Assembly: GCA_004431415.1 (NCBI GenBank)
Contig: QPMI01000115.1
Span: 62,001 to 126,000, forward strand
Direction of reading: 5' to 3'
DNA length: 64,000 nt
Origin: Cyanophora paradoxa CCMP329
Lineage: Eukaryota > Plantae > Glaucophyta
The position numbers and the translations under genes were made by a program. How positions within the stretch are numbered: position 1 is the stretch's first letter; every line of letters begins with the position of its first letter. A model generated the notes under the pieces. The model made no database searches and was not told the DNA's origin. It saw nothing but the letters and a program-made list of their open reading frames with translations. Shown one piece after another: positions 1 to 48,590 of the stretch.

Positions 1-17
1 TCGGAGCGCGCTGCCAC

Positions 18-9267: not shown

Positions 9268-9353
9268 AATATGCATTTGGTGCACGCTATTGTCTCAGAG
9301 ATGGTGTAAATCACCGGTACCGGTACTGACGCTAGATCTTCTCTCGGGCGATG

Positions 9354-9461: not shown

Positions 9462-9547
9462 GCCTGATGGGTCGCCGGGTCGCCTTGCAGCCATAGAATA
9501 TTGCGTAGTAACATAGCATAGTTATTTTTTGTCTTCTTCGGAACTGC

Positions 9548-9628
9548 TAGTGTATTAGGGACTGATGCCCCAAGTAGACAAACAGCTTAGTGTATTAGGG
9601 GACTGATGCCCCAAGTAGACAAACAGCT
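9548..9628 (+). repeat. Tandem direct repeat, 2 x 40/41 bp
   Basis: tagtgtattaggg(g)actgatgccccaagtagacaaacagct at 9548-9587 and 9588-9628; the copies differ by one G. Confidence 0.95.
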
Positions 9629-9815
9629 AATGCTACCTGCCTACCCTAGGCCTAAACCTACAAACACACTGCGAATCTAGCTTACTCCCCACTATAGGGT
9701 CTCCAGCTAGACGAACGCCAAGGGAATCTCCCTACGGCGAAGTTAACGACCGCAAGGTCGACGTCGCATCGCCATACAGGCGTCCCCGACGTCGACGCTC
9801 CCTGAGCCTCTCCAC

Positions 9816-22139: not shown

Positions 22140-22592
22140 CCAGGGGCCGCGCGCCGGCCGGGGCCCGCCCGGGGCCCGCTCGGCGCCATCCCCTCGCCAA
22201 CTATCCCACCGCCGGCCCCCCGCCGCCTGATTCCACGCCCTCCTCCCCCCATCCCCCTTACCCGGCTCGCCCTTCCCCCCCCCCCCCCCGGCCGGGCCCC
22301 CTCTATCTCCCCCCCCCCCCCCTCCTGTTATCCCCACGCCGTCCGCTGGCCCTCTCTCTTCTCTTGCACACTTGAAAAATTGAGCTCGAGTGAGTCGACG
22401 TCAGGTGTGTGCGAATTCATACAACTGCAGTTCCAAATTAGAAGTTAGCTGTGCTAGCTGTGATTGTGCCATGCATATGATGGTCCGGACGATGCGAGCC
22501 GCTGGAAACCGCGGCGCGTGGGGAGGTGGGCCATTGCAACCCCCCCTGCTTTTTTGCCGGGGGGGTACGTCTCCACGACGATCTTCGTCGGT

Positions 22593-23929
22593 CGAGCGAT
22601 GCATGCGCAGCCCTTAGCAGCTGCAGCTGCGGGCGAGCGATACGCGAAGCGGGCGCGACTCACAGACGACCCCGAGCCGCCTCCAGGTGCGGGCGATGCA
22701 GCGCGGGGTCGGGGATCGATCGGTGGCCATGGGCGCGCGAGAGCGGTGCACGGGGGCGGCGAGTTTCAAACGGGCGAGCGATAGTGACCGGTGACATCGC
22801 TTCTCGACAGATGACTGGCGCGCGGTCTTCGCGGCGTCGGCGGTCGTCCCCGTCAGCGCCGAGGGCGTTCGCGCGTTCACGGAGCCCTCAGCCCTCGCCC
22901 GCGGCGAAGAACTGCTCGCAGCCGCAGCAGAAGCGTGGAGCGAAGCCGGCAGCGCATATGCATCGGGTGCTCTGCGGCTCACGATCCATGGCCAGCGCGA
23001 GTCAGCGTCGACGCCGGCGGCCACGGCCGTCAGCTGTGTGCGGACGCTGCAGCTGCGGATCGCGGCGCACTTCGGAGGCGGCGCAGAAGAAGCTCAGAGC
23101 GACGAAGCATGCGCACTCGTTCAGGCGTCTCTGACGGTGCGCCTCGAGCTTTGCCCGCGGTATACCTAACGCGGCGGCTGCGTTCGATGTACTCACAGCC
23201 AGCGCCGCCCGCGCCGGAGCAGGAGAGCGAGGCGGGCGGGAGCCGAGCGCTAGTGTGCACCGCGGTCACGTGCACGGGCGCGGCGTGTCGGGAGTCGCTC
23301 GGCCTCTGCCCGCACGCGGCCGCCTGCCTCCTCCGCCTCGCTGCCGCGCCCTCCCTCCCCGACCTCCTCGACGTCGACGATCAGGTGCCGGTGCTTTCGA
23401 CTTGTACTTCCTCACGCTTCCCTAGAGGCTTAACCGCACCGCCACTGCGTACCCTCAGCCTGACAGCATCCCGGAATCCCCCCCCCCCCCCCCCCCCCCC
23501 CCCGCTAAATACGGATAGACAAATAAGCTTCCTTTTAACGAGATAGGTCCTACTCAGCACTCTGCGCACAGTTTCTCGACCACCATTATTCATTTTATTC
23601 ATTTCAGCTAAAGGCACTTCACATAAATTATGCCTGCCACTCAGCTCCCTGCACATGCCCCCCCCCCCCCCCCGCCCCCCCTCCCCTCCGCCCCCCCCCT
23701 CCCCGCCCTCCCCCACCCCTCCCCCCAAAGAGAGAAATAGGCTTACCTATAGTGAGATAGGCCTTCTCCGAGCTGCTCCGGATCCTTCGGACCCTCTTCT
23801 CCCCACCACCATGTACCCGCGTACCTCCCCGCTTGCCCCCCCACCCCCCACCCCCCCCCCCCCCCCCCCGCCCACTGCGAATCCTCAGCCCATGCATATG
23901 CATGGTCTTCCCAACCTCGCCCCCGACCA

Positions 23930-23960
<31 letters not shown>

Positions 23961-26900
23961 GCATCCAGAGCTCGAGTCAGCATCCAGCTCACAATATCTC
24001 TAGTCAACGCTGCCTCGTGATCAACTTCTAATTACCAAATTAATGCCTCCCGCAGGCGCATGCGTCGCCTCCTCCATGTGCGGAGGGCGCGAATGCTAAC
24101 CAGCTCGGCGAGGGGCTGGCGGAGCGGGCCGTCGCGGCGGGCCTCGAAGCCTTCCGCCGCTCGCGCTCGCCGATGTGGCGCTGCGCTCACGCGGACTGCA
24201 AGGAAGACAGGCGCCTCCCAGGCGACTTCCGCGAGGTGCTGCAGACGACTCAGCCGCACTTTGCAGCGTTGGACTATCACGGATGCGAGATCTGCCTGCA
24301 CCCGATCGAGGGGGCGCCCCAGTCCCAGGAGCCTCTTTTCTACTCGCGCACTTGCGGACACCAGCTGTTCCTCGAAGATAAGATCGCCGACGGTGGCGAC
24401 CCCGCCTGCTTCAACGCGTGCGTTCTCGCTTCTGATTTTGATCGTGAGTCTGCTTGTCATAAGCTTCTTACCCCTCTGCAGGGTCTTCAACCGACTCCGC
24501 GCGTTCTCTGAGCAGCTGCGCGCGGCGGGCCAGCTCTTGCCGGCGGCGGGCGTCCTCCTGCGGCTGGCGGCGTCGTTGGCGGAGTTTAAAGGAGACGAGA
24601 GGCTCCTCTGGCGGTACGAGCTCAGCGGCGCCGACACGAAGCTCGTCAACAGCAGGGAATTTCAGCAGCGCCGGCCTCAGGCGAACGCTTGCGCGGACCA
24701 CGCTGCCGAGTGCCTGTCCAGCCTCTGTGTGAGCCCCTTCTGTTTCTATCTAACTATGAGTTCGCGCCTTCAGCTCACACGCGTACGTTGAGCAGCTTAT
24801 CGCCATCGACGAGCGCGTGAGCGCCCAGCAGCGAACCCTCCTGGCCACGGCGGCGCTGGAGATCGTGGACAGCTTCGGGCTTCGGCGGGACATCGTCGAT
24901 GCGGCCGATTCCGAGTTGCGTTTCGCGGACGATCCTTCCCTGTGCGATCTAAATGGTAGCTCTCACTGGGGCGACGGCGTCCGGACCGTCGTCCTGCGCC
25001 AAGCGGCCCGCACTGTCGTCCGCGCAGCGCGCATGGTCTGCGCTTCGGAACGCTTTTCTTGTCACGTTGTTTCGTCTAAAATCCGACCTGGGCAGACTCG
25101 CACCACCTGGGACCACCCGGCCCTCCGCGCCGCGCTCGCCGAGCCCTCTCCCTCCGCCAGCCTCGAGCTGCTTCGCCTGGAGCTCCCCCTCGATCTCAAG
25201 ATGCGCTGCCGCTACCTGCTTGAGCGCGGTGAGAAGTTTTGCTGGGTATTAGATTACAAGCTCACATGGACATCAGGCCGAGCACAAGAGCACCTAAACC
25301 TGTCTCGGGCCGGCGTCTTCTTTGAAACTCTGGTGCGCGGGCGCGCGCTCGCGATCGGTACACGCACTTGTCTGCTGAAATCGAACTTTGGTGTCAGGTT
25401 GGCCGCCCCGGGGACGCTGGAGCTGTCGCTGCCGTCCTCGAGCTCGTCGACAAGCACCTCCCGCTCCTCTTTGACGCCGACAGGCCGAATTTGGCCATCG
25501 TCGGCGGCAGCGGCTTGTTATGCGATCGCGAGTGCACACAGCTTGCAAGCTCTACTGCTGGACTCCACAGCCCCCTTTGCACTCGGCGGCGGTGTCGCTC
25601 GGTCTGGCAAAGCAGCGGTCGACTCCGGATCCCCTTGGAAGGCTCCGATTGGAGACAGCGCCAGAGGGTTGTCATGATTCTCGACTCGGCAATCAACATT
25701 GCAAAGACTGTCGAGGCTCTGCAGCAGCAGCTCGCAGCAGCGGGCGACCATCTCAGCGTGCTCTGGCTCAGCCTGGCGCTCATCACCCTCGGTCGCGATG
25801 AAATTCCTGACATTTACCTCTCGAGTCCGAAGGAGGTCAATCTCGTCCAGCTCCTGATCCGTTCCGGCCTCGCCCTCCGTTCGACTTCGAGCTCGCCCAC
25901 GTCGCCGCCGCCGCCGTCCCCCGAGCGCGAGTCGGCGGAGGCGCTGCGGGTGGCGGGGCTCCCGCTGGCGGACGCGTTCGCCGCCTGCGCCCAGCGGCCC
26001 GACGTCGCCCTCGAGGCGGCCCTCGTTCGCCTCGCCAGGACGGGATCGCTGCCGTACAAGTACTTTCATCAGGACTGCTATGTATTGCTTTCGGCAAGCC
26101 TCAGGATCGATGGCAAGGCGGAATCCCCGGCGCCGCAATTCTGGTGCACGCCTCTGCAGGAGGCTGGCCTCGGTGCATTATCGACAAGGTGCTTTACTTT
26201 CGATTGCAATTGCACTTCACATGACACCTGCTTACCTTTGTCTTTTTTATATCATTGCGCCAGATTCTTCCTGCACAATGCCAACCTTGCCACTGCTTGC
26301 TCGATGTCCGGTCGCTACGACAGAGATGGCCCTGAACCACACGACAGCTACCTCAGCAGGATCGGCGATGCGCTTTTCGGCCCCTTCTCAGCCGAGCCGG
26401 CAGCTATGGCCAGCCCGGCCCACGTCCTCGATGTCGCCGTGTCGCTTCTTGCGGCGCGGCGGGGAGCAGCGCTCAGCGTGCTCGGCGAGTGTCAGCCGGC
26501 TCTGCCCCAGCAGTACGAGACGCTGTTGCTGTCGTGCGCGCTTCGCCTGGACGCCCTGGATCGATTCGACGACGCGCTGCGGCTCGTCTCTGCCCTGCTG
26601 GAGATGGCCTCGGAAAGCAGCGACGCAGGGGCCGACGCCCGCAGGAAGCTCTGCCTCGATCTTCTCGTCAAAACGGACATTTTTAACGGGCCCCCGTTTA
26701 AAAGACTGTTATCGATATTCGATGATTTCGACCGGCTTTCCGCTCGCGACAACAGACCAGCACTCGTGCGCTATTCACGTTCATGCTCACTTTCAGCTTT
26801 CGATCGTCACTAACTATAACATCTCATGATCAACTATAACTGTTCATGATCATCGTCACAATCCAGGTCGGAGCTGTGGGGCTGGATGCCATCCGTGCAT

Positions 26901-29778
26901 TTCTGGACAGCAAAGCAGCCGCGTGGGCGTTCTCGAATGCGGACAACACATTCTCTCTTCAATTCGTGAATTGCGTTTTGCGGTCGCATCTTGCTGGGCA
27001 CGGCGGCTCGACCCTGTGCGAAAATTCCACAGTTTTCGGAGATGCGAGCCAGGAGCGGCGGCTCACAACAGAGGCTGTAGAGGCCCTCTTAGACGTCAGC
27101 CGCCAACAGGAGGGCGAGAGCACCGATTCCGTGCCCGGATACCTTGCGCGTGTCGTCCTGCAGCAGATGTCAAAGGTCGGCCGCACGCTCAGCTTGCCGT
27201 GCGAGGAAGACCAAGTCGACCTCATCCTCCGATACTCCGTTCTGCTCGACCAGAACGGAGACGTGGAGGGCGCCGCCGGCCTGGCCTTCTCCGCCATAAT
27301 ACGCTGTAGCGAATGGCCGCACTTCACGTATGCAGTGCGTGGCCAAGTTGATGAACGGCGTCTTCTCTGCTTTTCCGCATTTCCTCGCAGCTAATTTTAA
27401 CGCGTACGTGCGTTTCCGCGCAGCTTCGCCACCTCGACATCGCGGCCCCGCGCCTGGCAGAGCTCTGGGGCGTCTCCTCAGGCGGCGTGGGCTTCGCAAC
27501 ATTGCGGCGCCGTCTCTTCGGGCGCTTTCTGGATCGCTTCACGGATCTTCAGACGCCCTGCCAGCCCCGCGATCGCATCCCGGAGCCATGGGCTCTCAGC
27601 AAATCATTCGCGGAGAAGGTCGTCGGCATGGGGCGGGTGGACCCGCCCCTCGTCGACTACTTCCTCGCGGCGAAGATCGGCGTCGCTGCCTTCGCCAACT
27701 GCAGCGTTCGATTGCGAGCCCGCAACGAGCCCGAGTGGCACTCCTCCTTCGACCTCGGCTGCCCCCCCCTGTGGCGGCGGGTCCTCGGAGAGCTGGACGT
27801 CATCCTCCGTTCCGAAGATGCCGGTCCGTTCCCTTCGATCGCGCTTCCGTTTCTGACATCGATCTGCGGCGCGCGCAGTGGCGGAGGAGGACCGGGCCGA
27901 CGCTCTGCGGCTGGCAGAGCTCGTGTGGGACGCCTGCCCCTGCGTCCAGGCCGTCTGGGTCATGCAGAGCGCCCTTGCTTCCGGCGACGACGACAGCGAA
28001 GATCGCTACGAGAGCTGGCTGAAGGTGCTAACGAACGTTGCCTAATCTATCTTCGAGCCTTAAGTTGAGAGAATGTACCATGCAGTCGATTCTCAAGAAA
28101 CTCAATCAGAACGTCCACTTGATCTTTGCCGGCGGTGCGCTCTTTAATCGTGATTCGCCGTCATTTAAATGCATTTTTTCGTGTCCTGCGCCTTTGTCTG
28201 ACGGATCGGGGCCAGAGCTGCCCTCGGAATGCCAGCCGCGGTGCAACCTGCGCGTGTCAGGCGAGGCCGCTTTCACGGCCCGATTGGTCCTCGCCGCCGG
28301 AGCGCTTCTCTTCGCCACGTAACTCACATCCCGGCTCAAGAAACACATCGTTTTGCGATGATTTGAAGCTTATCACGAACACAGCGAGGTGACTGACTCG
28401 GAGGGGCGCGCCCGGGTCGAGGCTGCGCTCGGGTTGGACGCGTCCTCGAGCCCGGCCGGCGGTGTGTCCTCGTTGATGCTGCTTGCGCGCTGGTGCAAGC
28501 TTGCGCACGCGGCCTACTTCGAATTTGCAGGCGACATGCCTCCCTTGTTGTATGCATTATTTGTTGGCAGCCATCGATATCGATGGGCTTCGAATTCGCC
28601 CGGCCCACCTAAAATTCTCTCCAGCGACCCTGATCATGACGATCTGGCGGGGGATCTGGCGTTCGTCTGGCACGGCTCCGCGGACATGGACGGGCCCGTC
28701 AAAGTCCTTCAGCTCTACATGTTCTACATTACTGCCGTTGCCGGGCCTGAATCCGAATTCGAAGCTAGGCGCTTTGGACCGGGGCCCGGACCTGCCCCTG
28801 GCGACGGTGCACATGCGTCCGAGGACCGCTACACCGTCGAGCAGCTGGCGGCCCTCGGCAGGAGGATCCTCTCGCACCAGCGAGAGGCGATAGAGGGCGA
28901 GTACTGCGAGGACCCGGGCTGCCGCCTCTGCCGGGGCGCCGGCTGGTGGCCCTGGCGCTGCGCGCGGGGGAACCTGGTCCTCTTCTCCCCGGAGCTCCTC
29001 GGAGACCCGATGGCCCGCCTGACCACGGACATCGCGCTCCACTTCCCCTGGGTGCCTGGCCCTTGGCCCTAAGACCACCCCCGCTTTGACTGAGACCGCG
29101 AGATTATAAGCACCATCTAGAGCTAGAGCTTCTTGGATCTTTATATGTATGGCTATCGCTCACATCAGCTTTTTAACGTCTCACCTCGCGTTCTCTACGT
29201 GCAGGGGGAGGACGAGAGGGCCGAGATGGCCCACAGGATGGGTGTGGCCTACGCGATCGCGAAAGCTACGGCGGTCGCCGAAGCAGTGCGCGCCCGCGGC
29301 GCCGGCGGCATGCCCGAGAGCGAGCGGGAGGCGCTCGTGCAGTCGGCCCGCAAGGCGCGGTCGTTTTTCATAATTACATTTAACGTCCGACGGTCGGGAA
29401 ACGCCGCATATTTGAACCGCCCGCCCGCTCGCAGGCGTACATCGCCGCCCGGATCGTGACGCAGGAGCTTAAGCTGGTGTTTCCCGCCCTCACCCGACCC
29501 GAATTCCGCAGCGAGCACTCTTTCGAGGTCCGAGTCGTCCCTGCCCTCCGGTGCGCTTCCCCTTCCACTCGATACCTCGATTTAAATTCAAACTTGTGTC
29601 CGGATCCTTCATTGACCGACTTCTCACTTCTCCGTGCGAACGCGCGGCGGGGCGCAGGAGGCTCGAGATCTTCTCGTCGTTCCTCCCGGCGGATCCGGCC
29701 GCGCCGGCGCCCACCGTCGACATCGACGCACCCGCAGCTGCAGCGCCCGCTGCGCTTGGCTCTGGAGGAGCGCCCTAG
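22593..29778 (+). repeat. Left arm of a ~7.2 kb inverted gene duplication
   Basis: Reverse-complement similarity to 41618-48597, from cgagcgATGca(..)gcccttagc through ..ggaggagcgcccTAG. Confidence 0.95.
22599..29778 (+). CDS. Large unknown protein with an N-terminal SWIM-like Zn finger and long helical body, copy A (multi-exon; may be more than one gene)
   Basis: ATG at 22599 (..ERYAKRARL.., NLS-like). SWIM-like VTCTGAACRESLGLCPHAAACLL at ~23265-23333. Long Leu/Ala-rich helical ORFs (24817-25677, 25368-26813, 26846-27394, 28389-29072). Reading frames are conserved in the inverted copy. Confidence 0.7.
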
Positions 29779-31900
29779 GCCCCAGGCCGTAGTTATTATA
29801 TATCACGTATACGAGAACTGCAGACGTAAATGTAGAAAGAGCCGAACAAATACATATGCATAGCAGCTGTGCCATGCCTAGGGAGCTCGCGGCCAGCGCT
29901 CTTTTTCTCACGAGGGGCGGAGGGCGCGGAGGCTTTGAGGGAGCGGACCCGGAGCAGCTCCGATCGCGAGCCGGGGGTGTTGGGGGCGAACTGCTCGCTT
30001 TAATCCTGATCGATAGATGTGGTTCCCTCAGATGCATATGTTGACGGTATCTCTAGCTCTAGCTCTTCTTCGTGTCGACGACTCGATGTCTGTCTAGATC
30101 TTGCATGCAAGCTTAAGCCTCCAGCTGTACATGAACATGTAAATCCATATGTCTAGTCTAGCCTTTACTACCAAGGGTACGGTAATGCAACCTGGCATGC
30201 GCAGCTGGTACATGCACATGCATACCGCGTAAGCGCTTCCGACAATTGCAAGACAATGCAAGTTCTAGTTCAAGGTTCATTGACAATTGCAAACCGGACC
30301 CGGGAGGCGGACCGGAGTCACCGACTCACCGGACGTCACCGGAGGCTCCGGAGCCCGAGCCTCGAGCTCCCTGGCCCCTGGCCATGGGCCGTGGGCCGTG
30401 GCCCTCCGAGTCGGGCTCCGACTCCCTCAGATCGCGATTCGCGATTCGCGAGTCCCGACTCCCGAGCCTCCGAGGCTCCGACTGTCGGACGTCGACTTGG
30501 GCCGTGGTCCGAGGAAATTCGGAAATTCCGGGGGAAATCGAAGATCCTGCAATTTGGCTGCAAAAAAAGGCGTTCGAACTTCGACTTCGACTTCATGCAA
30601 TCACTCCGTCACGTTGACGTCAGACGTCGACATCGTCGCCAACTTACGTACGTCACGTACAGTACGCGTACGTATACACTGTGACTCAGTGACAGTATAC
30701 GTAGTCTAGGCAGTACTAGTGTACAGTAACTTCAGGGTAAGCCTAGCGTAACAGCCACCTACTGGTACTACTTAGTACTTAGTAGCTTCCATAGCCTAAT
30801 AAGCCTGTATATACTATGCTAGGCCGTCGGGCAGCCCGGGCTAGCCTACTACCTACTACTAGTAGTAGGCTACTACCGGGCCTACTAGGCTACTTACCGG
30901 CCCGGCGGCTGCCAGGCTCAGCCTGGCAGCGGCTCAGTGTGCCAGGCACTGCCAGCAGGCGGCTCACTGAGTCAGCCGCGGGCCGCGGCCCGCGGCTGCG
31001 CATGCGCCGGCTGGCCGCGGCCGTTAGCGACCGTCGGACGCGCCGACTCGGCGTCGAGTCGGCGACGCCTATTTATTAGTATAGCTAGCTAGCGTGACGT
31101 CGCGGCGCTTCGCGCAGATTGCCAAGTTGCAAGATCGCGTCGTCATCGCGACTCTCGGCGAATTCGAGAGCTTGTCGAACTTCGGAACTGAGCGCTCGCC
31201 GAGTGGCGATCGGCCGGCCCGGCGGTCTGCATGGTGGCCCGCGCGCGGATTACGTATCCTTCTCAACGCCGCGCGCGCGCGGCCCGGCGGCGGGCCGGCG
31301 GCTTCGACTCGGCGATGCTCAGGCGCGCCGCGCAGCATTGCCGCTGAGCATTGCGCGCATGCGCGCATTGCAGATTGCAGCTTTATGGCTGCGCATGCAA
31401 TTTGAGCTTCTGATCGCATCGCCGAGTCAATTTCGCGAGATCGAGAACTAGAGCTCATCAAGCGCCGCGGCAGAGAAGCTTGCCAAGCTGAAATTCGGAA
31501 GCTGGACGTCGACAGCCTGGCCTGGCAGCTGCAGGTAGCCTGCAGCTGGGCGCTGTGCAGGAAGCCTCAAGGCCTGTGCAAGTGACAGTAGGGCTATAGC
31601 TAGCTATAGCGTATACGTAAACTTCGTGCGCGCAACCTTCAGCTGCAGCGAGCTCGAATGGAGGATCTAGGGAAAGGCAGGGCAATAGACGAGGAAGCGC
31701 CGTCTCCGCAGAACCGCTCGCCTCAACCTGCTCCCAATTGCAAGTCCACGTTACGCGGCCGCCGGGCGTCTGGAGCCGGCTCGGGATCCGACTCCCGATC
31801 AGGTCCGTTACTTGCAATATTAATGCCGCGCGCGTGCCCGGGGCCGCGCATGCCTTGGCCTGTAGGCATCGCTAGCTGCGCCAGGTTCATCATCGCACTC

Positions 31901-34900
31901 ATGAGCACGCATGTCCATCCACTTGCCCCTTCGTCGCCAGTGGTGGAATCGACGTCCGGCCAGCGCTTCCTCTCGCTCTTCGAGTCCCTTCGCTTCAGCC
32001 CGCGCGAAGAGGTGTGCACGCGTACGCGTCGCGTCTGCCTCTCGTCCGATCATTCACATTTGCGCAGGCTCTATTTGGGCTTCTTTACAGGTGCGAATAG
32101 AATAATCATAATCTAAATCTCGCGTTCGCGCGCGCGCGCGATCTTGTTCTGAGAAAGGGTTTCGCGATGAATTAGCATGGTTGAAAAGACATGCAGGCGC
32201 TTCGGAGAGCTCGAGCCTGCAAGATATAGATCCGGACGACGCGGAGGAGTTGGAGGCGGCGAAGGTGCCGGCGTCCTATGTTCGATTTGATATCCCTAAA
32301 AGCTTACTGTCGCTGACGGCGGATCCGTGCACGTGGCCAGGCTCGAACCCGAAGAAACAAGCTCCTCCTATTTGCAAGCTTTTCCATAATCGGTATTTTA
32401 TCCGTCCTTAAGCTTATTGGACGGCTGCAATATCGAATTACCTTGTAATTGATTCCGGTCCACCGATCGCGATGCGCAACAGAGGCAGCTCAGCTAATCG
32501 CCATCGTGATTTCCCCCGCGACGTGGCCCGACGAGATCATGGGCTGGATCAGCCGCGTCACTGCTCTATCCAGGGTCAGCGAAACACTCTAGCTTCAATG
32601 CTCTCATTCCAGCTTGTTTGAACGACAATATCAAATTAATAGTGATGAAACTAAAATCCGCGCGCAGCTGGTGTTTAGGAACAGCCGGGCTTTCACTGCG
32701 CTTTACTGGGCCTCCGGCGCCTGCGTCGCCGCCATATTCTCCTTGATAGCATACGTTCTCTACACGCTCGCACAGGTATATAATTGTCTCTTAATTCTCC
32801 AAGCTTCAATTTATCTTTCCCGCGGCCGCCTTCTTAATTTACCTGTGCTGCGCAGCGGAAGTACAGGGCGGGCCCCATGCGCCTGCTGCGCTTTCTTGTC
32901 AAGATTGTTCTCCTTCGCGTCTACATTTCGATCCTCCAGCTATTCTTTCGACCCTTTGACTGCGCTAGCCTCTCCGGCACCGACATCGCTTGCTGGACGC
33001 AAGCGTGGGTTCGTGACATTTAAGCGGGCCGAGCTCGCCAATCTATCTCCATAGTTGTTCAATGGCTGAATTCAAAAACAGATACCCTATTTTTCGGGCT
33101 CGGTTCTTTTCCTCGGCTTCACGATTCCATTCGTCTTAATTTTCTCTCTCTTGTTCCACGGTGCAAACTCTTCTGATTTCGAGCCTTGTTTTTAACGTAG
33201 TTGGATTCACGCTTGAACGATCAGATGCCAATCCGAACTCCCCCGATTTTGACGGCAAGAGCTCTGGTACCGGCGACTTTCTTTCGACGCTAGTTCAGAC
33301 CGTTCTCGCAATTTCAGCGACATTCCTCGGGTATAAATACATATATATGCGCTCGAATATGTGCGAAGGTCGAAGCTCGATACAAAGGCCTCCGCAGTTC
33401 GACGGAATTAGAGCAGTCTGGGCTCTGCATGATGGTTTTTGTTTTTGTGGGCGGTCTCGCTGCCTATGTTTCAATTGTACAGGTGAGCCAGTCGATTTCG
33501 AGTCAGCATTGTCACGATCGCCGATCGCGAGTCGAGTTTGCTGTCTGCTAACGTAGCCTTTTCGCATTTTCGACCCTTATCAGCCTTATTTCAAGCCCCA
33601 GAGGTGAGAATTCATTTTACTGCAGCCGGTCGTGATTCGGCTCTAAATCTGATCTAATACAAATGTGCACCCAGCAACGATCTCAGAGCAGGCCTTTATT
33701 CTCTCGTATCCTGCTTTGCTCTTTGGACTTTTGTCCTTTCGTTCTTAGAAGGATTGGTGCGCTTGCCGTCCCACTCAGAACAATAATGTTGCCTATCGCT
33801 ATTTCAAAGTTTCGACCTCACGATTACAGACTGCTATTATTTTTGGATGCATCGGGATCGCCCTTTGCCCCGCATTCTTTTACATCGGCTTCCTCGTCAC
33901 CCGTGCGTCGCACTCACTCGAGATTTGGAATATGTGTATATTTGCAATTGGTTGAACTTGAACACACAAACCCTCGCGTGTGCAGGCAAGAGACGCCAAT
34001 TGCTGATAGCGTTCCACGATCTCTGGTCGTCGCGAGAGATGGAGTACTTGGAGAATATAACTTCGCAAAACCCGGAGGCACTGCGGACTCCGTCGAGCTC
34101 GACGCACATGAATCGGGATGCGCCTCCCACTCTGAAGTTCAAGAGCCCGTTCTACTTCAAGTGCGGTGCGTAAATACAGCTTGTTTTATATTCGCAATAT
34201 ACGCTGGAAGCACACGTCTGCGTTATAATCGAAACGATCGAGCCTTGCAACTGCAGACGTACAAATCGCGGCCGGGTGCTTTGCCTCCAACGCATCCGCC
34301 GCGTCACTGGATCGGGCGGAGCTCATCTTTCAGCGGGTGCGCGTTCTCAGCAGCTCCCTGGTATTTAAAGACATTTCCATTTTAGGGTTTAGAGATATCG
34401 ATTGCGTCGTCTCGTCGAAGAAGAAGCTGAAGTCCGATTCGTTTTCGCAGGGGTGCGAGCAGTTCAAACACGCGGCCGACATCCACATTGTATTCGCTAG
34501 CTTCCTCCTCGCTCACTCGTGCGCTCCTTAAAGCTTGCAATTGCGCCTACCTGCTTATTTCTGAACTAAGACCAAATCTGCGATTCAAATATATTAGGAG
34601 GAAATCGAAAACGGCGGTGAAGCTGCTTAAGCGGGCCCTCCAGCTCAGCCCCAACATTCAGCTTCGGTTCCGGCTGGCATGCATTCGCCGGAACGCCGAG
34701 CAACGCTCGCACGGGAGCGACCTTGGCTCGTCGAATGGGAAAGTGGTGCGCGCGCACGGTAACGTGCAGAAATCCTGCAGCTGTGAGCAGATATCTTTTG
34801 ATAACTAGTTGCAATTGCCCCGCTGTGCAGAACTTCATCAACATGCTCCAGTTCAAGGGCCTCCACAACGAGGCGCTGAAGTCGGCGAACGCCACGCTAC

Positions 34901-37900: not shown

Positions 37901-40900
37901 CAGGCGGCAGATCCGGAGCAATCCGAGGATGTGGAGCCGGCGCCGCCTGTACAGATGCAGGGGCGGTCGGCTGCAATCGCCTCTAGATCTACAGCTAGCG
38001 CTTCCAAGCCCGCAGAATCCGTGGCTGGTGAGATGGACGTTCGGCGGGCTCAAGGGCATGATGCACATGTCGAATTGCCCGATTTGAAACCTCTCCAGAG
38101 CGCCCAGTCCACGTTGCATTTGCAGCTTCCGCGTCAGCGCATCAGAACACGGACTAGTAATTCATCCGCGACCAAAATCAGCACACAGAACCAGAATCTG
38201 AAGTTCACTCTTCCCGGTAGCAAGACGACGACAAGCCCAAACCCGGTCACTCTCCAACACAACGGGCGCCCGAATCTCCGTACCCACTCTCTAGACGCGC
38301 GCCAAGCCGTCCAACTTGGCTCTGATTACAAGGCCTCGCGGTCGGTCAGCCTTGACGCGCTCCAGTCTACCTCGCCAGCGCTAGCACTAGCAGGTTCGAT
38401 GCCCGAAATATATCGTTCAAATTTAAATTCGTTCGAGATTGCGCGCTGCGTTCTTAATCAAGCCTTTGATTTGCAGAGGACCGAGATGGCGACCGCGACA
38501 TCGTCATCGCCATTTCGTCCTCTTCGAATTGCTTGCTACGAGAATCGGAGGCAAAGACGGCTAGCGCTGCAGATTCTAGTTCTGCGCCCGGATCGTTTCC
38601 GTTCTTTCTAACGTTGCAAGAACCGCAAGACGCCGGCCTGGCGGCTCTGCCGGGTAAAAGCAGTCGACTTTGTCACGCGGCGGGGCCCAGCCCGTACGTG
38701 TGGCGACCCTCGCTGGTTTTTCCACGGAACGGCGTTGATCGTGAGAGCGATGCCAGCGGGCTTGAGCTCGCCGCCGCTGAAGACCAGCTCAATTCTAAGG
38801 ACGGCGATCTCGAGACGGGCTCTTCGGGAGGGAGCGGCCTTTGTCTGCAGCCGGCGCCGCATGCGCAGCCACGATATCGATTTGCCGCTCAAGACGACGC
38901 GGAGGCGCAGGCCCCCCCGAGCCGCGGCATTCTTCGGCGCTCATACGAGCGCGTTCCCGCACATGCGAGACACGGAAGCAATGGCGAGGACTCAGAGCCC
39001 AGGTGGGCTTACTCCAAGACCGCCCCCTTGAACGTCCGGCAGAGTGCGTCCACCGAAACTCGAATTTCGCGAGCCTGCAGCTGATATATGTGGTCTTCAG
39101 CAGGTGATAAACCGGCAACCGGAAACGTTAAGCTGCAAGACCAGCAGAAGGTCGGCAATAGCAAAGCCGGTGCAAGGCCCGGGCGGCCACAGGCGCACGA
39201 CGGGGTGCTTGCCCGCCTTACCCGCAAGTACCTCTTGAGGTATATCCATATGCTCGTTCGCGTCATGTAATATTATTCCGCTTACACCTTTTGAATGTTC
39301 GAATTCTCGCCAGCTTCTCCCTTGTGGCAGTCTTCGTCGCGGGATCCTTTTCCACCGCTTTGATCGTTCTCAACCTGTGCAAGAGCTTCCCCGCTGAGTC
39401 GAACTGGGGATCCATCCGGCGAATGCGGTCCCGCGAGCTGGCCTTCCTCGTAAGAATATTAATCGCCTTCTTCTATTCTGGAAAAGCATATCTAAGCTTA
39501 AGTACAACATTACCGCAATGCAATGCAAATTGTAAACAAAAGAACCCGTTTCAGCGCCTCTGATGCTACATTACTTTGGTTTCAGGCGCGCGAGCTTTAC
39601 ATCGTCCCTTCGTCCGTCGTTTTGCCGCGCGACGACCTCTTCCGCCTCCTCAGCGATGTTCTCGTGCGCCCCTTGTAATCTAGTTTCATAAATTCGCACG
39701 CTTCTCTTTCACAAGCCTCATAATCACGATCAAAGCTTCCCATATATGTGCTGGCTCGATCCGCTTCCCTGAGGCTTAATCATTCATTCATTGATCATCG
39801 CTGCAGGGCGAGGTTCAATGGATCCACAACTCGATCCGTTTTGGGAACGGCTCTCTGAACCTTCCTGGGTCCGTCTGGTTCTTTTATAGATCTCGAATTT
39901 ATAAAACTCGTGCTAAAGGCTACTCATACTCGATCAGGAACGACCGCCGGTACCCCGCTGCCAACAGCCTCATGTGTGAGTCCTTTTGCGTCGTTCAGGG
40001 GGACAGATCATCTTTCGGATGTATCAACCGATCGATTTGAATTAATATTGCCACCGACGCCGAGCAGACTACCCCACGTGCCTGCGGGACGACGGCGCTT
40101 GCGACAAGTACACCGCGGGGGAGAAAGCCATTATGTACTCTGGACTGGCGAGCATGTTTGCGCACTTCATTGAGCGCGTGATGGCCGTGTCTTTGGTGCG
40201 TCGTCAAATTAAAGAGCGTTCACGTTTCTCTTATTTCAAATGCATTTCGCGGACATGTACAGGAGCAGCAGTGCACGTACGCCGGCGGCTGCGCGACGGC
40301 CTCCTCGCCCGTCGACTTCTCTGCGTCGAAGGAGATCGCGGCGGTCCTGAACATAATGCCCACCCTCGACACCGGAATGAAGGTATGCGCGGGCCCGCCA
40401 GCTCTTACACAAATGATTTATTATAATTATATAAATACATACACAAACTGCGCCCCGTCGACGTCTTGACAATCGATATATCGTTAATCTATATACATAT
40501 ATTGCAGAACGATCACGCCAGTACTAGCGCTGTACCGTAGCACACGCATATATGTCCGCCTCGATCATGACGGTTGTCCCGGCCCGCGAGCAGCTCGCCA
40601 ACGACTACACGGTGGAGGAGGCGGACTCGCTGGTCAGCCTGGGCGTCCTCGTCCAGGGCGTCCTCCTCGCCGCCGACATCCTCGTCCTCTTCGGCCTCTA
40701 CTGTGCGTTCTATATATTACCGTTAGAATTCAATTCGTTTTCTTTGCATAATCTCGCTTAAGCTTATATAAGGAGAATCGCAGTCGCGGTCTTCAGTCCC
40801 CTCATCAAACGACTCCAAATCGAGAGCAACCGAGCGACACAGGTGCTACTAGAATATGCGTTTCGTGTAAACGCAATTGCGGTAACATAAAGGCTGGCTG

Positions 40901-40995
40901 CTGCGCAGATTCTTTCCATGCTGCCCGTGAAGCAAGTGTCTGAGCTGCCGTTCCTTCGCTCCTACTTCGTCTCGCAGACATTCTCTGCAAGCTGA
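31901..40995 (+). CDS. TmcB/TmcC (tiny macrocysts)-family multi-pass membrane protein with TPR-like region, many introns
   Basis: N-terminal TM cluster (32.5-34.2 kb). Family-like helical block LLKRALQLSPNIQLRF..AEQR..MLRRFWRQL..AEALFAQLVQSYPNSKQL..AYAQFLEQVANQPDQA. Internal TM pairs. C-terminus FSPLIKRLQIESNRATQ|ILSMLPVKQVSELPFLRSYF..* (TGA 40993-40995). Confidence 0.8.
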
Positions 40996-41617
40996 AAATG
41001 TAAATATGAAACATGTACAGAATAATTCTTGACCCGAGCCCTTAATTCAGCGTGATCGTTAGCATTGCATTTCTGGTGGCACGTGCACATTGCGTACGCC
41101 GGCGCCTTGGACTCCGGGAGCTCGAGCTCGAGGGGGCCGGGCAAATATATGTAGTTGCCGGATCCGCGCCTTCCCCGTCGACGTCGTGCCTCTCCGGATC
41201 CCAGTCCAAGTCAAGGGCACGGTCTGGCTGCCTGCTGCCTCCCTGCGTATTTCAAGTACTAGTCTTCCTATGTCGACGTCTTTCCCCAGGGTCTCCCTCC
41301 TTTAATTTCTCCCGGGTCCCGGATTCCTCGACCGTCGACGTCGACGTCGGACTGACGGCGTGGGGCTGGCCCTCGGAATCCGAAAGCTGAACTATATAGA
41401 AGGGCGCCCCCGCCCGCGAGGGCGCCCGGCGCGGCCCTCGGGCTCTCGCCCCAGCTCTGACCTGACCAGGGTGCTAAACGTGAAATGAATATATAACTTT
41501 GTAGCTACAAAAGGATTCAGGGCTAGGCTCCGGAACCAGGCACAGGGGGCTCTGCACAGGAGTAAATTCAAATTGAGTGCTGAGCGGATGGCGTTATCGT
41601 CCTAAGCGGATTCCGGT

Positions 41618-44600
41618 CTAGGGCGCTCCTCCGGGGCCAGGCGTTGCAGCTGCAGGTGCGTCGACCTCGGCCGCGGGCGCCGGCGCCGGAGACCCGCCAG
41701 CCTCGCGATCTGCCGGATGCTCTGGAAGGAACGACGAGAAGATCTCGAGGTTCCTGCACCGGCGCCGCGCCAATTTGAATGCAAATCCAGGCATCCAGTG
41801 GGCGCGTGAGCGTACCGAAAAGCAGGAATGACGTGGATCTCGAAGGAGTTCAGATTTTGAAAGACATGCGTGGCGAGGACGGGAAACGCGTTTTCGAGCT
41901 CCTGCATCGCGGTCCGGGTGGCGATGTATGTCTGCGGGCGAATTTGGTTCGGTTCGACAGAACACTGTGCGCACGCGTGCGGTATATATACGACTTCTTT
42001 GATTTGTGATTGCTTTGTCGATTTTTAATTTTACTACCTACGGGGGGTTCGCCCTTCCGTATTCTCTCAAAAAACAATATCGATATCGAAAATAGTTTTG
42101 CAATCAAAGAAACGCACTTTGCGGGCCGACTGCACGAGCGCCTCCCGCTCGCTCTCGGGCATGCCGCCGGCGCCGCGGGCGCGCACTGCCTCGGCGACCG
42201 CCGTCGCTTTCGCGATCGCGTACGCCGCGCTCGTCATGTGAAGGAGAACGGCCCGCTGGATTACCCCCTGCGCGCCTATCGTGAGTTGCTGCTAGGCCTT
42301 GGCCTAGGCCCAGATGGGCCGAGCCCAGCAAATTGCGGTCACCCAGGGGAAGCAGAGCGCGACGCCGATCGTCAGACGAGCGATGGAGTCGCCGAAGAGT
42401 GCCGGCGAGAAGAGGGTCCGGTCCCCGCAGCGACACGCGCCCCGGCAAAGGTGGCATTCGAGCTCGAGCTCCGAGCAGTACTCTTCGTCGTGCGAGGGGA
42501 TCGCTTCGGCAAGTGCCTCCAGCTGCTCGACGCTGTACCCGTCCTCCAGCGCCCCCCGGCCAGGGTCGGGGCCGATCTCGAACCGCTGGCGCATCGCGAG
42601 CTGGACGTAGTGCACGAGACAGCTAACGGGTCCTTCCATGTCCGCAGAACCGTGCCAAATCCGCGATTCAGGATCGTCCTCGTCGCTGGAGAGAAATACG
42701 TTCCGTCAGCTGCCGCCGAAGCCCCAAAACAAAAGTATGCATGATTCAATATAAATTAACGCGGACAATGGAGGGGGCACGTCGTCGTCAAACTTGGCGA
42801 AGGCGGCGAGCTCGCACCAGCGCGCGAGCAGCATCAGCACGGAGGCGAGGCCGGCCGGGTTCGAGGACGTGTCCAGCCCCAGCGCCGCCTCAACCCGGGC
42901 GCGCCCCTCCCAGCCGTCCTCGCCTTCGCTGCGCTCGAAGCTGACAAAAGAGTAGATTTTTGATACAGGTATACATCTGAACTGCGACGTACCTGGACAG
43001 GAGGAGAGCACCGGCAGCGAGGAGCAAGCGGGGGGTGAGCCGGATCTCGTCGGATCCTCGGAAATCCGGCTGGGGCGAACTTCCATCGAGCTTCGGCAAC
43101 TCTGGTCTCCAACGCGCCGTCAGACAAATTGAAGTCCAAAACACGAATAGTCGATCGTAATTTGAGTTCTAGGTCTAGGTCTAGAAGCCTAGTGCAGCGG
43201 ACCTCCAGCAAAGATCAAGTGGATATTTTGCTTGAAAGCAACCAGATTCGTCTGAATGGCATGCATATGGTTTGCATTAATGTCACACTGGGGATCCAAT
43301 CATAAGATCACGTAGGCATCAGCCACAGCACCTTCAGCCAGCTCTCGTAGCGATCTTCGCTGTCGTCGTCGCCGGAAGCGAGGGCGCTCTGCATGACCCA
43401 GACGGCCTGGACGCAGGGGCAGGCGTCCCACACGAGCTCTGCCAGCCGCAGCGCGTCCGCCCGCTCCTCCTCCGCCACTGCGCGCGCCGCACATCGGACA
43501 CGGGAGCTGCAGGAGTGATCGAAGGGAACGGACCGGCATCTTCGGAACGAAGGATGACGTCCAACTCTCCGAGGACCCGCCGCCACAGGGGCGGGCAGCC
43601 GAGGTCGAGGTTGCATTCGCTGGAGGAGTAAAATCGCGACAGGCTGCGGGCTTGGGACCGAACGCTGGCGAAGGCGGCGACGCCGATCTTTGCTGCCAGA
43701 AAATAGTCGACGAGGGGCGGGTCCACCCGCCCCATGCCAACGACCTTCTCCGCAAATGATTTGCTGAGAGCCCACGGGTCCGGGAAGAGATTGTGAGGCC
43801 GGCGGGGCGTTTGGAGATCGTTCAAGCGATCCAGAAAGCGCCCGAAGAGGCGGCGCCGCAATGTTGCGAAACCTACACCGTCCGAGGGGACGCCCCAGAG
43901 CTCCGCCAGACGCGGGGCCGCGTGGTCCAGGTGGCGAAGCTGCGCGCCAAGAAGGCAAAATTGTAAAGGTAGCGGCCACGGAGAAATGACGTCGTTCATT
44001 GGACATAATCACGTGCACGCACCGCATACGTGAAGTGCGGCCATTCTCTACAGCATAAAATGGCGGAGAAGGCGAGGCCGGCGGCGCTCTCCACGTCCCC
44101 GTTCTGGTCGAGCAGAACGGAGTATCGGAGGATGAGGTCGACTTGGTATTTGTCGCACGGAGTGTTGAGCGTGCGGCCGACCTTTGACAGCTGCTGCAGG
44201 ACGACGCGCGCAAGCGATCCGGGCACGGCGTGTGCGCTCTCGCCCTCAGGCTGGCGGCTGACGTCTAAGAGGGCCTCCACGGCCTCTGTGAGCCGCCGCT
44301 CCTTGCTCGCATCTCCAAAAACTGTGCAATTTTCGCACAGGGTCGAGCCGCCGTGCCCAGCAAGATGTGACCGCAAAATGCAATTCACGAATTGAAGCGA
44401 GAATGTGTTGTCCGCATTCGAGAATGCCCACGCGGCTGCTTTGCTGTTCAGAAATGTACGGATGGCATCCAGCCCCACAGCTCCGATCTGGATTCGAGAA
44501 GTTATAATTTGTGAAGATTGCGATCGAAAGCTGAAGCTGAGAGTGAGCGTGAACGGAATAGCGCGCACGATTGCTGGTCTGTTGTCGCGTGCGAACCGCT

Positions 44601-47600
44601 CGCCAAAGCATCTCAGTCTTCTGAACGAGGGCCCGGAGAATATGTCCGTTTTGACGAGAAGATCGAGGCAGAGCTTTCTGCGGGCGTCGGCCCCTGCGTC
44701 GCTGCTTTCCGAGGCCATTTCCAGCAGGGCAGTGACGAGCCGCAGCGCGTCGTCGAAACGATCCAGGGCGTCCAGGCGAAGAGCGCACGACAGCAACAGC
44801 GTCTCGTACTGCTGGGGTAACGCGGGCTGACACTCGCCGAGAACGCTGAGCGCTGTTCCCCGCCGAGCCGCAAGAAGCGACGTGGCGACATCGAGGACGT
44901 GGGCCGGGCTGGCCATAGCTGCTGGCTCGGCTGAGAGGGGGCCGAAAAGCGCATCGCCGATCCTGCTGAGGTAGCTGTCGTGTGGCTCAGGGTCATCGCT
45001 TTCGTAGTGCCCCGACATAGAAAAAGCAGTGTCAAGGTTGACATTGCGGAGGAAGAATCTGGCGCAATGATATAAAAAAGACAAAGGTAAGCAGGTATCA
45101 TGTGAAGTGCAATTGCAATCGAAAGTAAAGCACCTTGTCGATAATGCACCAAGGCCAGCTTCCTGGAGAGGCGAACACCAGAGTTGCGGAGTTCGAGGTT
45201 CCGCCTTGCCATCGACCCTAGCCGAAATCGACTTGTAGCGGTCCATATCAAAGTACGGCAGCGATCCCGTCCTGGCGAGGCGAACGAGGGCCGCCTCGAG
45301 GGCGACGTCGGGCCGCTGGGCGCAGGCGGCGAAGGCCTCCGCCAGCGGGAGCCCCGCCACCCGCAGCGCCTCCGCCGACTCGCGCTCGGCCGGGGATGGC
45401 GGCGGCGGCGGCGAACTCGAAGTCGAACGGAGGGCGAGGCCGGAACGGATCACCAGCTGGACCAGCTCGACCTCCTCCGGACCCGAGAGTCGGATGCGAG
45501 AGATTTCATCGCGATCGAGGGTGATGAGCGCCAGGCTGAGCCAGAGCACGCTGAGATGGTCGCCCGCTGCTGCAAGCTGCTGCTGCAGTGCCTCGACGGT
45601 CTTTGCCACGTCAATTACCGAGTCGTGAAGGACGACAACCCACTGACGCTGTTTCCAATCCTCGCCTCTGAAGAGGAGTCGACCGCTGCTCTGCCAGACC
45701 GAACGACACCGCCGCCGAGTGCAAAGGGGGCTGTGGAGACGAGCAGTCGAGCTTGAAAGCTGAGTGCACTCGCACGCCCAGTCGCTGCTGCTGACGACGA
45801 CGGCCGATCTCGGCGCAAAGCACGTGGCGTCGGCATCAAAGAGGAGCGGGAGGTGCTTGTCCACGAGCTCGAGGACGGCAGCAACAGCTTCGGCGTCCCT
45901 GCGGCGGCTAGCCTGACACCACCGTTCGATTTCAGCAGACAAATGCGTGTACCGATCGCGAGCGCGCGCCAGCGCACCAGCTCTTGCACTGAAGCCACGA
46001 GAGTGCTGGCGACGCCTCCGGCCCGAGACAGGTTCAGGCGCTCTTGAGCTCGACCTGATTTCCAAGAGAGGTTATAATGAATACTGTACTTTAATGCCCA
46101 GAAAGAACTCTCCAGCTCACCACGCTCGAGCAGGTAGCGGCAGCGCATCTCGAGATCAAGGGGAAGCTCCAGGCGAAGCAGCTCGAGGCTGGCGGAGGGA
46201 GAGGGCTCGGCGAGCGCGGCGCGGAGGGCCGGGTGGTCCCAGGTGGTGCGAGTCTGCTCAGGCCGGATTTTAGACGAAATAACGTGACGAGATTAAGAAA
46301 AGCGTTCCAAAGCACAGACCATGCGCGCTGCGCGGACGAGGGTGCGGGCCGCTTGGCGCAGGACGACGTGGACGCCGTCGCTCCAGTGAGAGCTACCATT
46401 TAGATCGCACAGGTAAGGATCGTCCGCGAAACGGGACTCGGAATCGACCGCATCGACGATGTCCCGCCGAAGCCCGAAGCTGTCCACGATCTCCAGCGCT
46501 GCCGCGGCCAGGAGGGTTCGCTGCTGGGCGCTCACGCGCTCGTCGATGGCGATAAGCTGATCAACGTACGCGTGTGAGCTGAAGGTGCGGACACGCGTAC
46601 ATAGCTTAGCAGAAACGGAAGGCGCGCACACAGAGGCTGGACAGGCACTCGGCAGCGTGGTCCGCGCAAGCGTTCGCCTGAGGCCGGCGCTGCTGAAATT
46701 CCCTGCTGTCGACGAGCTTCTTGTCGGCGCTGTTGAGCTCGTACCGCCAGAGGAGCGTCTCGTCTCCCTTGAACTCTGCCAGCGATGCTGCCAGCCGCAG
46801 GAGGACGCCCGCCGCTGGCAAGAGCTGGCCCGCCGCGCGCAGCTGCTCAGAGAACGCGCGGAGTCGGTTGAAGAGCCTGCAGAGGGGTGAGAAGCTTATG
46901 AAGAGCAGACTCACGATCGAAATCAGACGCAAGAACGCACGCGTTGAAGCAGGCGGGGTCGCCGCCGTCGGCGGTCTTATCTTTAGGGAACAGCTGGTGT
47001 CCGCAAGTGCGCGAGTAGAAAAGAGGCTCCTGGGACTGGGGCGCCCCCTTAATCGGGTACAGGCGGATCTCGTATCCGTCATCACCAAACCCCGAAGCGT
47101 GCGGACGAGTCGTCCTCATCACCTTACGGAAGTCGCCTGGGAAGCGCTTGTCGTCGTCGTCGGCGCAGTCCGCTTGAGCGCAGCGCCACATCGGCGCGCG
47201 CGAGCGGCGGAAGGCTTCGAGGCCCGCCGCAATGGCACGCGACGCCAGCCCCTCGCCGAGCTGGTTCGCCCTCTCCGGATCCGCCGGCGGTGGCGGAGAA
47301 GCGCTTGGCTGCGCAAGGGGGGAAGAGATTGAAGAAGCGTTGATTAAAGTAGAAACTGAGGGCTGGATGCTAGCGCGAGGGAACTGGGGATAACTCTACT
47401 CTTATATGAATACAACGGCAAGCTCTGCGATGGCAAGTATAAATCTGTGTACATGTGTACATGTGCGCCTATGTGCGTCTGCGTGTGGTCGCGGCGGGGG
47501 GGGGGGGCGAAGGTGGGGACTCTCATAAGGCCTATATCGCTGGATGGTGGGGACATTCAGAAGTATAGAGGAGGGTTTGCGGGGGGGGCGCGGAGGGAAG

Positions 47601-47692
47601 GCCATTCATGGGCGGAGGGTTCGCAGCGGCGATGATTAGAAAGCGGGTGAATGCATGATGAGCCGTGGGGGTACGTATGGTGAGCGAGGGAG

Positions 47693-47725
<33 letters not shown>

Positions 47726-48590
47726 CCAAGCAGCCTATATACATAGCTAGAGCGACGCCTTAACGAGGACTAGCCAAGAGCGTGCTTTGGGAAGGGGAAA
47801 ACGCGAGAAGAGTGGTGTACCTGATCATCGAGCCCTCGGAGGTCGGGGAGGGAGGGCGAGGCGGCGAGGCGGAGGAGGCAGGCGGCGGCGTGCGGGCAGA
47901 GGCCGAGCGACTCCCGACACGCCGCGCCCGTGCACGTGACCGCGGTGCACGCGCGGCTCCCGCCCGCCTCGCTCTCCTGCTCCGGCGCGGGCGGCGCTGG
48001 CTGTGAGTACATCGAACGCAGCCGCCGCGTTACGTATACCGCGGGCAAAGCTCGAGGCGCACCGTCAGAGACGCCTGAACGAGTGCTTCGTCGCTCTGAG
48101 CTTCTTCTGCGCCGCCTCCGAAGTGCGCCGCGATCCGCAGCGTCCGCTCACAACTGACGGCCGCGGCCGCCGCGGCCGGCGTCGACGCGGACTCGCGCTG
48201 GATCGTGAGCCGCAGAGCGCCCGATGCGCTGCCGGCTTCGCTCGACGCTTCTGCTGCGGCTGCGAGCAGTTCTTCGCCGCGGGCGAGGGCTGCGGGCTCC
48301 GTGAACGCGCGAACGCCCTCGGCGCTGATATCGATCATGACGTCGACGGGGACGACCGCCGACGCCGCGAAGACCGCGCGCCAGTCAACTGTCGGGAAGC
48401 GATGTCAGCGGTCGATCACTATCGCTCGCTCGTTTGAAGCACGCCGCCCCCGTGCACCGCTCTCGCGCGCCCACCGATCGATCCCCGACCCGGCCCGCGC
48501 TGCATCGCGCGCACCTGGAGGCGGCTCGGGGTCGTCCTCGAGTCGCGCCCGCTTCGCGGATCGCTCGCCCGCTGAAGCTAAGGGCTGCAT
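41618..48590 (-). CDS. Large unknown SWIM-like-finger protein, copy B (paralogue of 22599-29778)
   Basis: MQPLASAGERSAKRARLEDDPEPPP.. start at 48590. Identical SWIM-like motif CTAVTCTGAACRESLGLCPHAAACLL. The 689-aa ORF 43996-46065 parallels copy A. Ends ..PGGAP* at 41618. Confidence 0.7.

Follow-up and report, generated by a model that had tools for sequence, protein, structure and literature searches.

Concerted evolution of inverted paralogues by interlocus (non-allelic) gene conversion is known from the arms of the human Y-chromosome palindromes and from duplicated globin or opsin genes. Here we describe an inverted pair of paralogous genes, copies A and B, in a 64,000-nucleotide stretch of the genome of the glaucophyte alga Cyanophora paradoxa CCMP329 (GenBank assembly GCA_004431415.1, contig QPMI01000115.1, positions 62,001 to 126,000 of the forward strand; hereafter the window, with position 1 as its first letter). 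As in known pairs undergoing interlocus conversion, A and B are inverted within ~12-26 kb, show a short-tract mosaic of identity which ignores exon/intron borders, and differ at silent sites to a strongly heterogeneous extent, with one end of the duplicate apparently having escaped homogenization. In contrast to the Y-palindrome arms and the globin or opsin cases, the tracts in A and B are short (~60-130 nt) and of many ages instead of forming one long homogenized arm and, unlike known conversion pairs, the process is read here from one genome and in an uncharacterized gene family. An old inverted duplication, overlaid by short-tract gene conversion and combined with constrained helices and near-neutral loops, is in our judgement the probable and best explanation of the locus, which a preliminary description based on the letters alone had tentatively interpreted as a near-frozen scaffold with hypervariable patches under diversifying selection.

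The inverted duplicate, proposed in that description and borne out here, is confined to the transcription units, with 22559-29780 of copy A (+ strand) corresponding to 48623-41620 of copy B (- strand). Similarity extends from ~40 nt 5' of the start codons to the stop codons. The two copies are convergent (tail-to-tail), are separated by 11.8 kb, and are annotated as the consecutive genes g968 (A) and g969 (B). Their organization is as follows:

22599-29778, + strand: copy A gene, 20 exons, 1689 amino acids (aa), published as tig00000451_g968 (P0009)
41618-48590, - strand: copy B gene, 20 exons, 1662 aa, published as tig00000451_g969 (P0001)
22599-22686, 22811-23136, 23223-23384, 24056-24417, 24482-24728, 24796-25035 and 25096-25228, + strand: exons 1-7 of copy A
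25277-25332, 25398-26188, 26264-26765, 26867-27334, 27424-27823, 27879-28024 and 28086-28134, + strand: exons 8-14 of copy A
28216-28318, 28385-28549, 28625-29051, 29205-29354, 29435-29550 and 29658-29778, + strand: exons 15-20 of copy A
22599-28024, + strand: 5' two-thirds of copy A (exons 1-13; partner in B, 48590-43332), apparently partly homogenized, silent divergence 0-45% in patches
28025-29778, + strand: 3' third of copy A (exons 14-20; partner in B, 43331-41618), with old and apparently largely unconverted divergence

Ten GT..AG joints of copy A, including that of a 75-nt intron (intron 9), were present in contigs of three RNA-like runs placed on 23000-28999, and the other introns of copy A were deduced from the reading frame, the splice signals and the comparison of A with B. 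In both copies the reading frame is open across all exons. When the 19 introns of A are projected onto B, every boundary falls on GT or AG, and the B model obtained in this way is identical to P0001 over the entire 1431 residues of the latter (232-1662 of the model) and supplies the first 231 aa that the published one lacks. The A model departs from P0009 only at the exon 2/3 junction and the exon-4 acceptor; for the former the canonical GTGCGC..CAG pair of P0009 (23137-23222) is adopted, the choice between this and the alternative (23160-23227) being immaterial to the statistics, as the eight affected codons are identical in A and B. Two genes of an uncharacterized family known only from Cyanophora thus have corrected models over their full length. 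Both copies are intact and transcribed, and splicing was shown for copy A, where it was seen in three RNA-like runs; B-type contigs, those of exon 10 included, were present in the RNA-like runs, showing that B is transcribed too.

Along the gene, the identity of A and B forms a mosaic, ranging in 100-nt windows from 96-99% down to 50-70%. Differences at silent sites (four-fold degenerate and intronic, n=2091) were clustered along the gene (permutation p<0.0005), and were clustered within the 5' part alone as well. Silent divergence amounts to 2-5% at the 5' end, 5-20% in the middle and 33-43% around 27343-27690, followed by 8% at 27690-27839 and mostly 45-65% in the 3' third, within which an island of 12% occurs at 29167-29357, where the putatively converted segment 29246-29353 is 97% identical. 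Clustering of this kind is what gene-conversion tracts that differ in age leave behind on an old duplication. Heterogeneous silent divergence and tracts crossing exon/intron borders, by which interlocus gene conversion is recognized, were both found here, the latter at 23113-23245 and 26172-26272. A and B are mutual closest relatives in every segment, and even in the 3' part they share 58-64% identity compared with 38-45% to other paralogues.

The preliminary description had regarded exons diverging faster than the adjacent introns as a hallmark of diversifying selection. In the 5' 5.4 kb, pooled introns were mismatched at 13.9% of positions and four-fold sites at 13.5%; this equal divergence of introns and synonymous sites is a second mark of interlocus conversion. 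In the 3' third the corresponding values were 44.6% and 35.8%. Single introns scatter both ways: Jukes-Cantor divergence was 0.013 for intron 9, 0.015 for intron 2, 0.06-0.10 for introns 1, 4, 6 and 8, 0.2-0.28 for introns 5, 7, 10 and 12, and 0.45-1.04 for introns 3, 11 and 13-19. Introns 8 and 9 lie below their flanks in divergence, but introns 5, 10 and 11 lie above theirs, which shows that the supposed hallmark rests on selected introns.

Intron 9 (26189-26263 in A, 45133-45059 in B), whose single-base difference had been pointed out in the preliminary description, is indeed a real GT..AG intron, with its joint present in all three RNA-like runs and its sole difference at 26225. It lies within a longer tract:

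26172-26272, + strand: near-identical tract of 101 nt with one difference (26225), enclosing intron 9 and 10-17 nt on each side

At the edges of this tract there are 12 differences in the 48 nt upstream and 14 in the 64 nt downstream, many of them at third codon positions, and three are synonymous changes in conserved PLQEAGLGALST codons. Synonymous changes beside the intron indicate that the neighbouring exons are old and were not recently rewritten, and the simplest reading of 26172-26272 is a short recent conversion tract of ~100 nt.

Selection was assessed by pairwise Nei-Gojobori estimates of synonymous (dS) and non-synonymous (dN) divergence, and of their ratio dN/dS (omega), on the A/B codon alignment of the spliced models:

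Whole gene: dS 0.26, dN 0.12, omega 0.47
5' scaffold: dS 0.17, dN 0.06, omega 0.36
3' third: dS 0.63, dN 0.29, omega 0.46
Five exonic patches pooled (75 codons): dS 0.38, dN 0.44, omega 1.15 (bootstrap 0.67-2.10)
Objectively defined low-identity blocks (168 codons): dS 0.35, dN 0.34, omega 0.95

The scaffold, which had been called near-frozen, contains windows with a dN of 0 and yet a dS of 0.31-0.46, and many fully conserved protein stretches have a dS of 0.3-0.46; this indicates ordinary purifying selection on a scaffold that is not frozen. In the patches dS was 0.38, twice that of the scaffold. Omega was not significantly above 1 at the variable sites, be it in the pooled patches or in the objectively defined blocks, and although single patches reached 1.5, the overall value stayed at ~1 even though the patches had been picked for their amino-acid divergence, which argues for neutral drift rather than positive selection. 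With silent divergence clustered, omega at ~1 and one of the patches intronic, the diversifying selection suggested in the preliminary description found no support.

All six variable patches had been taken as coding. This holds for patches 1, 2, 4, 5 and 6, which lie in RNA-covered pieces included in P0001 and P0009 and whose indels are in frame as reported, and fails for patch 3, which is intron 7:

26055-26117, + strand: patch 1, exon 9 (B, 45255-45205), dS 0.36, dN 0.27, mostly coil in the prediction
24251-24301, + strand: patch 2, exon 4 (B, 47107-47057), dS 0.27, dN 0.41, predicted coil with a predicted local distance difference test score (pLDDT) of 26-29
25229-25276, + strand: patch 3 (EKFCWVLDYKLTWT), equal to intron 7, 48 nt (B, 46120-46055, 66 nt), with GTGAGA..CAG ends
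25479-25526, + strand: patch 4, exon 9 (B, 45831-45772), dS 0.53, dN 0.52, helix end and loop in the prediction
27697-27750, + strand: patch 5, exon 12 (B, 43666-43607), dS 0.35, dN 0.48
26703-26744, + strand: patch 6, exon 10 (B, 44619-44590), dS 0.48, dN 0.70 over 10 codons

Patch 3 is skipped by both published models, P0001 and P0009, and absent from every paralogue, and an RNA contig terminates at 25229, where intron 7 starts. In five other paralogues the patch columns had an identity of 0.23 compared with 0.46 elsewhere, a value as low being reached by 2 of 2000 random block sets, and one-sided gaps were commoner in the patches. When the five exonic patches were considered together with four further low-identity blocks, 37% of the residues in these variable segments were predicted to be helical versus 64% overall, and the pLDDT of the segments was 26-69, mostly below 55. 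As judged from this prediction, the patches appear to be the least constrained loops of the family. Variable surface loops had been proposed earlier, and the patches do fall at helix ends and loops of the predicted all-alpha protein, in a model too poor to place them on one surface.

Consensus errors in the patches, a concern raised at the outset, were not found, as independent contigs, from a DNA run of 2024 and from the RNA-like runs of 2019/2020, cover the exonic patches without differences. Apparent strain variants in the mapped contigs were rejected as polymorphism, since all of them match either copy B or a third paralogue (27916-27931) and represent cross-placed contigs.

The history which would account for these data begins with an old convergent inverted duplication of one member of a multigene family known only from Cyanophora. 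Gene conversion in short tracts, recurring between the two inverted copies, would then have replaced the 5' two-thirds piece by piece without regard to exons and introns, leaving tracts of different ages with ~1% to more than 40% silent divergence, and the 3' third would mostly have escaped conversion and would show the true age of the duplication, its silent sites being near saturation. On top of this mosaic, purifying selection would hold the helices constant despite diverged synonymous sites, and the loops would evolve about neutrally and gather in-frame indels. Indel-rich heterology probably blocks later conversion, and the loops would thereby come to stand out as 'hypervariable patches'. 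Both parts of this scheme, gene conversion as the homogenizing process and its blocking by heterology, are what we infer from the pattern. Mosaic conversion of this kind between inverted paralogues mimics the association of conserved introns with fast exons that is usually read as positive selection, and scans of GC-rich protist genomes can be expected to meet it often.

Several observations weigh against this explanation. Two of the four tracts of at least 90 nt with no more than one difference (23113-23245 and 26172-26272) exactly enclose introns 2 and 9, a pattern which random placement of tracts does not predict (p ~0.025), and intron 8 (25333-25397) is likewise a conserved island between diverged exons. 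Omega exceeded 1 for the patches in 72% of the bootstrap replicates, and with two sequences and 75 patch codons the power is low, such that omega may be above 1 at a subset of sites. Gene conversion is deduced from the pattern only and in a single genome, and the structure model (mean pLDDT 54.7) is too poor to place the loops in space. The enclosed introns would be accommodated if introns 2 and 9, and perhaps 8, carried splicing regulators, small RNAs or other functional elements and were kept near-identical by selection; besides the enclosure itself, the intron 9 tract stopping 10-17 nt from the splice sites would fit such a role. However, no Rfam family matched anywhere in the window, the folding of intron 9 does not surpass that of shuffled sequence (z 0.28), divergence is unhindered in the other short introns, and near-identical tracts of like length are also found wholly within exons, so that we consider selection on these introns quite improbable.

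The proposal that the loops serve in recognition and are driven by diversifying selection would take the conserved introns as a sign that A and B are young copies, and would place them in a polymorphic intracellular receptor or defence family whose exonic patches were rewritten adaptively. It draws on the patches being exonic, keeping their frame through indels, lying in predicted loops and occupying the positions most variable across all paralogues, and also on the omega point estimate of 1.15 (up to 1.5 in single patches), on introns 8 and 9 being more conserved than the flanking exons, and on a lineage-restricted family having expanded to at least seven genes. Yet the omega interval spans 1 despite the choice of patches for amino-acid divergence, the objective blocks give 0.95, the diverged synonymous sites beside intron 9 point to old exons, there is no excess conservation over all introns, some of which exceed their flanks in divergence, and one patch is an intron. 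Moreover, neither NB-ARC, NACHT, LRR and TIR nor any other domain of the immune type was detected, and strain polymorphism was not seen in the single DNA run mapped; the proposal as a whole seems unlikely to us. Decay of one copy as a pseudogene, or an assembly artefact (haplotypes or a collapsed repeat), with the patches reflecting decay or error, might be suspected from a patch omega of ~1 and from the GC in place of GT at the intron 18 donor of copy A. It is highly improbable, as both frames are open over ~5 kb with the other splice sites intact, overall omega is 0.47, both genes are in the published annotation, and A-type and B-type contigs occur in the RNA-like runs as well as at comparable single-copy depth in the DNA run (~54 and ~65 at 26540-26603).

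The explanation by old duplication and short-tract conversion places A and B in a gene family that, as had been surmised, is undescribed, having no Pfam domain, no relative in the PDB and homologues that were found only in Cyanophora paradoxa. Database relatives of the encoded proteins were exclusively EukProt C. paradoxa models on tig000... contigs. Searches were made with single exons or database proteins, and the joined A/B models served for the codon alignment only. A phmmer search with a 689-aa piece of B against 1.84 billion representatives gave six true matches, all from Cyanophora, and a second search added P0009, indicating a family of at least seven genes. No Pfam family was detected in raw open reading frames (ORFs), single exons or P0001-P0006, except for a DDE_Tnp_4 tail on P0002, and the family profile had no sequence match in the PDB at E<=1. 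A literature search for Cyanophora with SWIM or gene conversion returned nothing relevant. In P0002, encoded on another contig, residues 1670-1736 match the first 69 positions of the Harbinger-type DDE_Tnp_4 transposase domain (E 6e-8); the gene predictor has probably joined an adjacent transposon to the model.

AlphaFold2 modelling of residues 1-1200 of P0001 from a six-sequence alignment gave an all-alpha structure with the mean pLDDT stated above, usable for secondary structure only; the model of the N-terminal 215 aa of P0004 (pLDDT 38.6) was unusable. Foldseek and VIA-align revealed only generic alpha-solenoid matches (TM ~0.1; Z <=9.8, which does not reach the noise level of helical repeats). 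As far as these predictions allow, the family would consist of all-alpha repeat proteins of ~1700 aa whose N-terminal region is rich in Cys and His, and an N-terminal KRARL-type basic motif followed by the predicted alpha-solenoid suggests that they may act as nuclear scaffolds or adaptors. The all-alpha prediction, the generic solenoid matches and the nearest language-model clusters (0.85-0.89) recall TPR-like alpha-solenoid scaffolds such as INTS8, INTS10 and ZIP4/SPO22. These three, the ESM Atlas neighbours of the protein body, all scored below 0.9 and serve only as leads; Pfam gave no TPR match, and with scores below evidence level the analogy is one of architecture only.

The preliminary description had referred to the SWIM-containing ZSWIM family; the feature concerned is:

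23223-23384, + strand: exon 3 Cys/His motif (B, 47976-47821), C-x4-C-x4-C-x7-C-P-H followed by AAACLLRL, SWIM-like but non-canonical

Like ZSWIM4-8 (for example ZSWIM8, a cullin-RING substrate receptor), A and B are predicted to have an N-terminal Cys/His motif ahead of alpha-helical repeats that span over 1000 aa, and their CPH-AAACLLRL segment resembles the C-x-H helix of SWIM. The motif is also conserved in P0004, but only resembles SWIM, and a language-model neighbour of the N-terminus (score 0.88), a cluster with SWIM in 20% of its members, is a lead only. The CxCxnCxH SWIM signature was absent from both copies in a regular-expression scan of three forward frames each, and the SWIM profile (PF04434) had no match at E<=10 when exons 2-4 of A and exon 3 of B were scanned with hmmscan. 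Unlike ZSWIM4-8, then, A and B have neither the signature nor a Pfam match to SWIM or to the ZSWIM C-terminus, nor any PDB sequence match, and membership of this family was not borne out. A structural match to ZSWIM8 (chain 9rwz_M; Z 7.4, 134 residues, root mean square deviation 5.2), obtained with the low-confidence model, is at the level of dozens of unrelated helical repeats.

A and B resemble plant NLR/LRR and allorecognition loci in that the family expanded within one lineage, the paralogues are clustered, the variable segments keep to fixed positions and neighbours apparently undergo conversion. In contrast to such loci, no nucleotide-binding, LRR or other recognized sensor domain is present, Pfam having found no NB-ARC/NACHT P-loop, LRR or TIR in the six paralogues, and omega is not above 1. 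By analogy with some immune gene clusters, one might imagine a glaucophyte-specific recognition family in which an alpha-solenoid bears at least five fixed-position loops, diversified in each paralogue and with variants shuffled by short-tract conversion; we hold this to be improbable. If it were true, the conserved introns 2, 8 and 9 could mark preferred start sites of conversion or regulatory elements.

The motif ERADALRLAELVW..CPCVQA is invariant in the family. RNA-like contigs at 27880-27963 match neither A nor B at 27916, 27922, 27925 and 27931 and continue into sequence coding for RDVLTADGD (read by eye), as in P0002, which indicates that a paralogue ~45-50% identical in protein is at least 95% identical in DNA over ERADALRLAELVW..CPCVQA.

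Three details of the gene models were also recorded. The acceptor for exon 4 in P0009 (isoform.t2) is a later one, whereby 49 residues at the exon start (24056-24202), including a conserved MWRC motif, are skipped; an RNA-like contig runs unbroken over the exon 4 start from 24053, and alternative acceptors may be used. The donor of intron 18 is GC in copy A (AAG|GCGCGG; 29355-29434) and the canonical GTGCGT in copy B (42117-41932); the published A model splices at the GC donor, and an alternative in-frame GT donor occurs at 29385. The third detail concerns the long intron 3:

23385-24055, + strand: intron 3, 671 nt in A and 512 nt in B, low-complexity and C/G-rich, poly-Pro/Gly-coding-like

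Between A and B, intron 3 has diverged beyond alignment (54% mismatch). RNA depth over 23400-23999 was nil except in one run, which had a trace (0.84) at 23600-23799, and the contig whose placed part starts at 24053 has 94 further unplaced letters upstream. In the DNA run, the summed word depth reached ~45,000 at 23600-23799 with many false joints, indicating a genome-wide simple repeat.

The copies are separated by the following region:

29779-41617, no strand: spacer between A and B, 11.8 kb, G+C 50-60%, without annotated gene

ORFs in the spacer are only short and gave no Pfam match. The G+C content is 48-56% at 1-10000 and 32000-42000, compared with 61-76% in the gene-bearing parts of the window. 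A second inverted repeat pair, 51605-53179 and 54139-55722, is 79-99% complementary in blocks and ~1 kb apart, and is a probable further case of conversion between inverted paralogues; the conversion mosaic thus probably characterizes the genome and is not peculiar to this gene family. Should the pattern prove genome-wide, Cyanophora would be a glaucophyte in which the tract length and GC bias of conversion could be measured conveniently. Upstream of copy A and outside the duplication, a gene at 20982-22139 (+ strand) ends in a coiled coil and a C3HC4 RING finger (Pfam E ~1e-3, below the cut-off).

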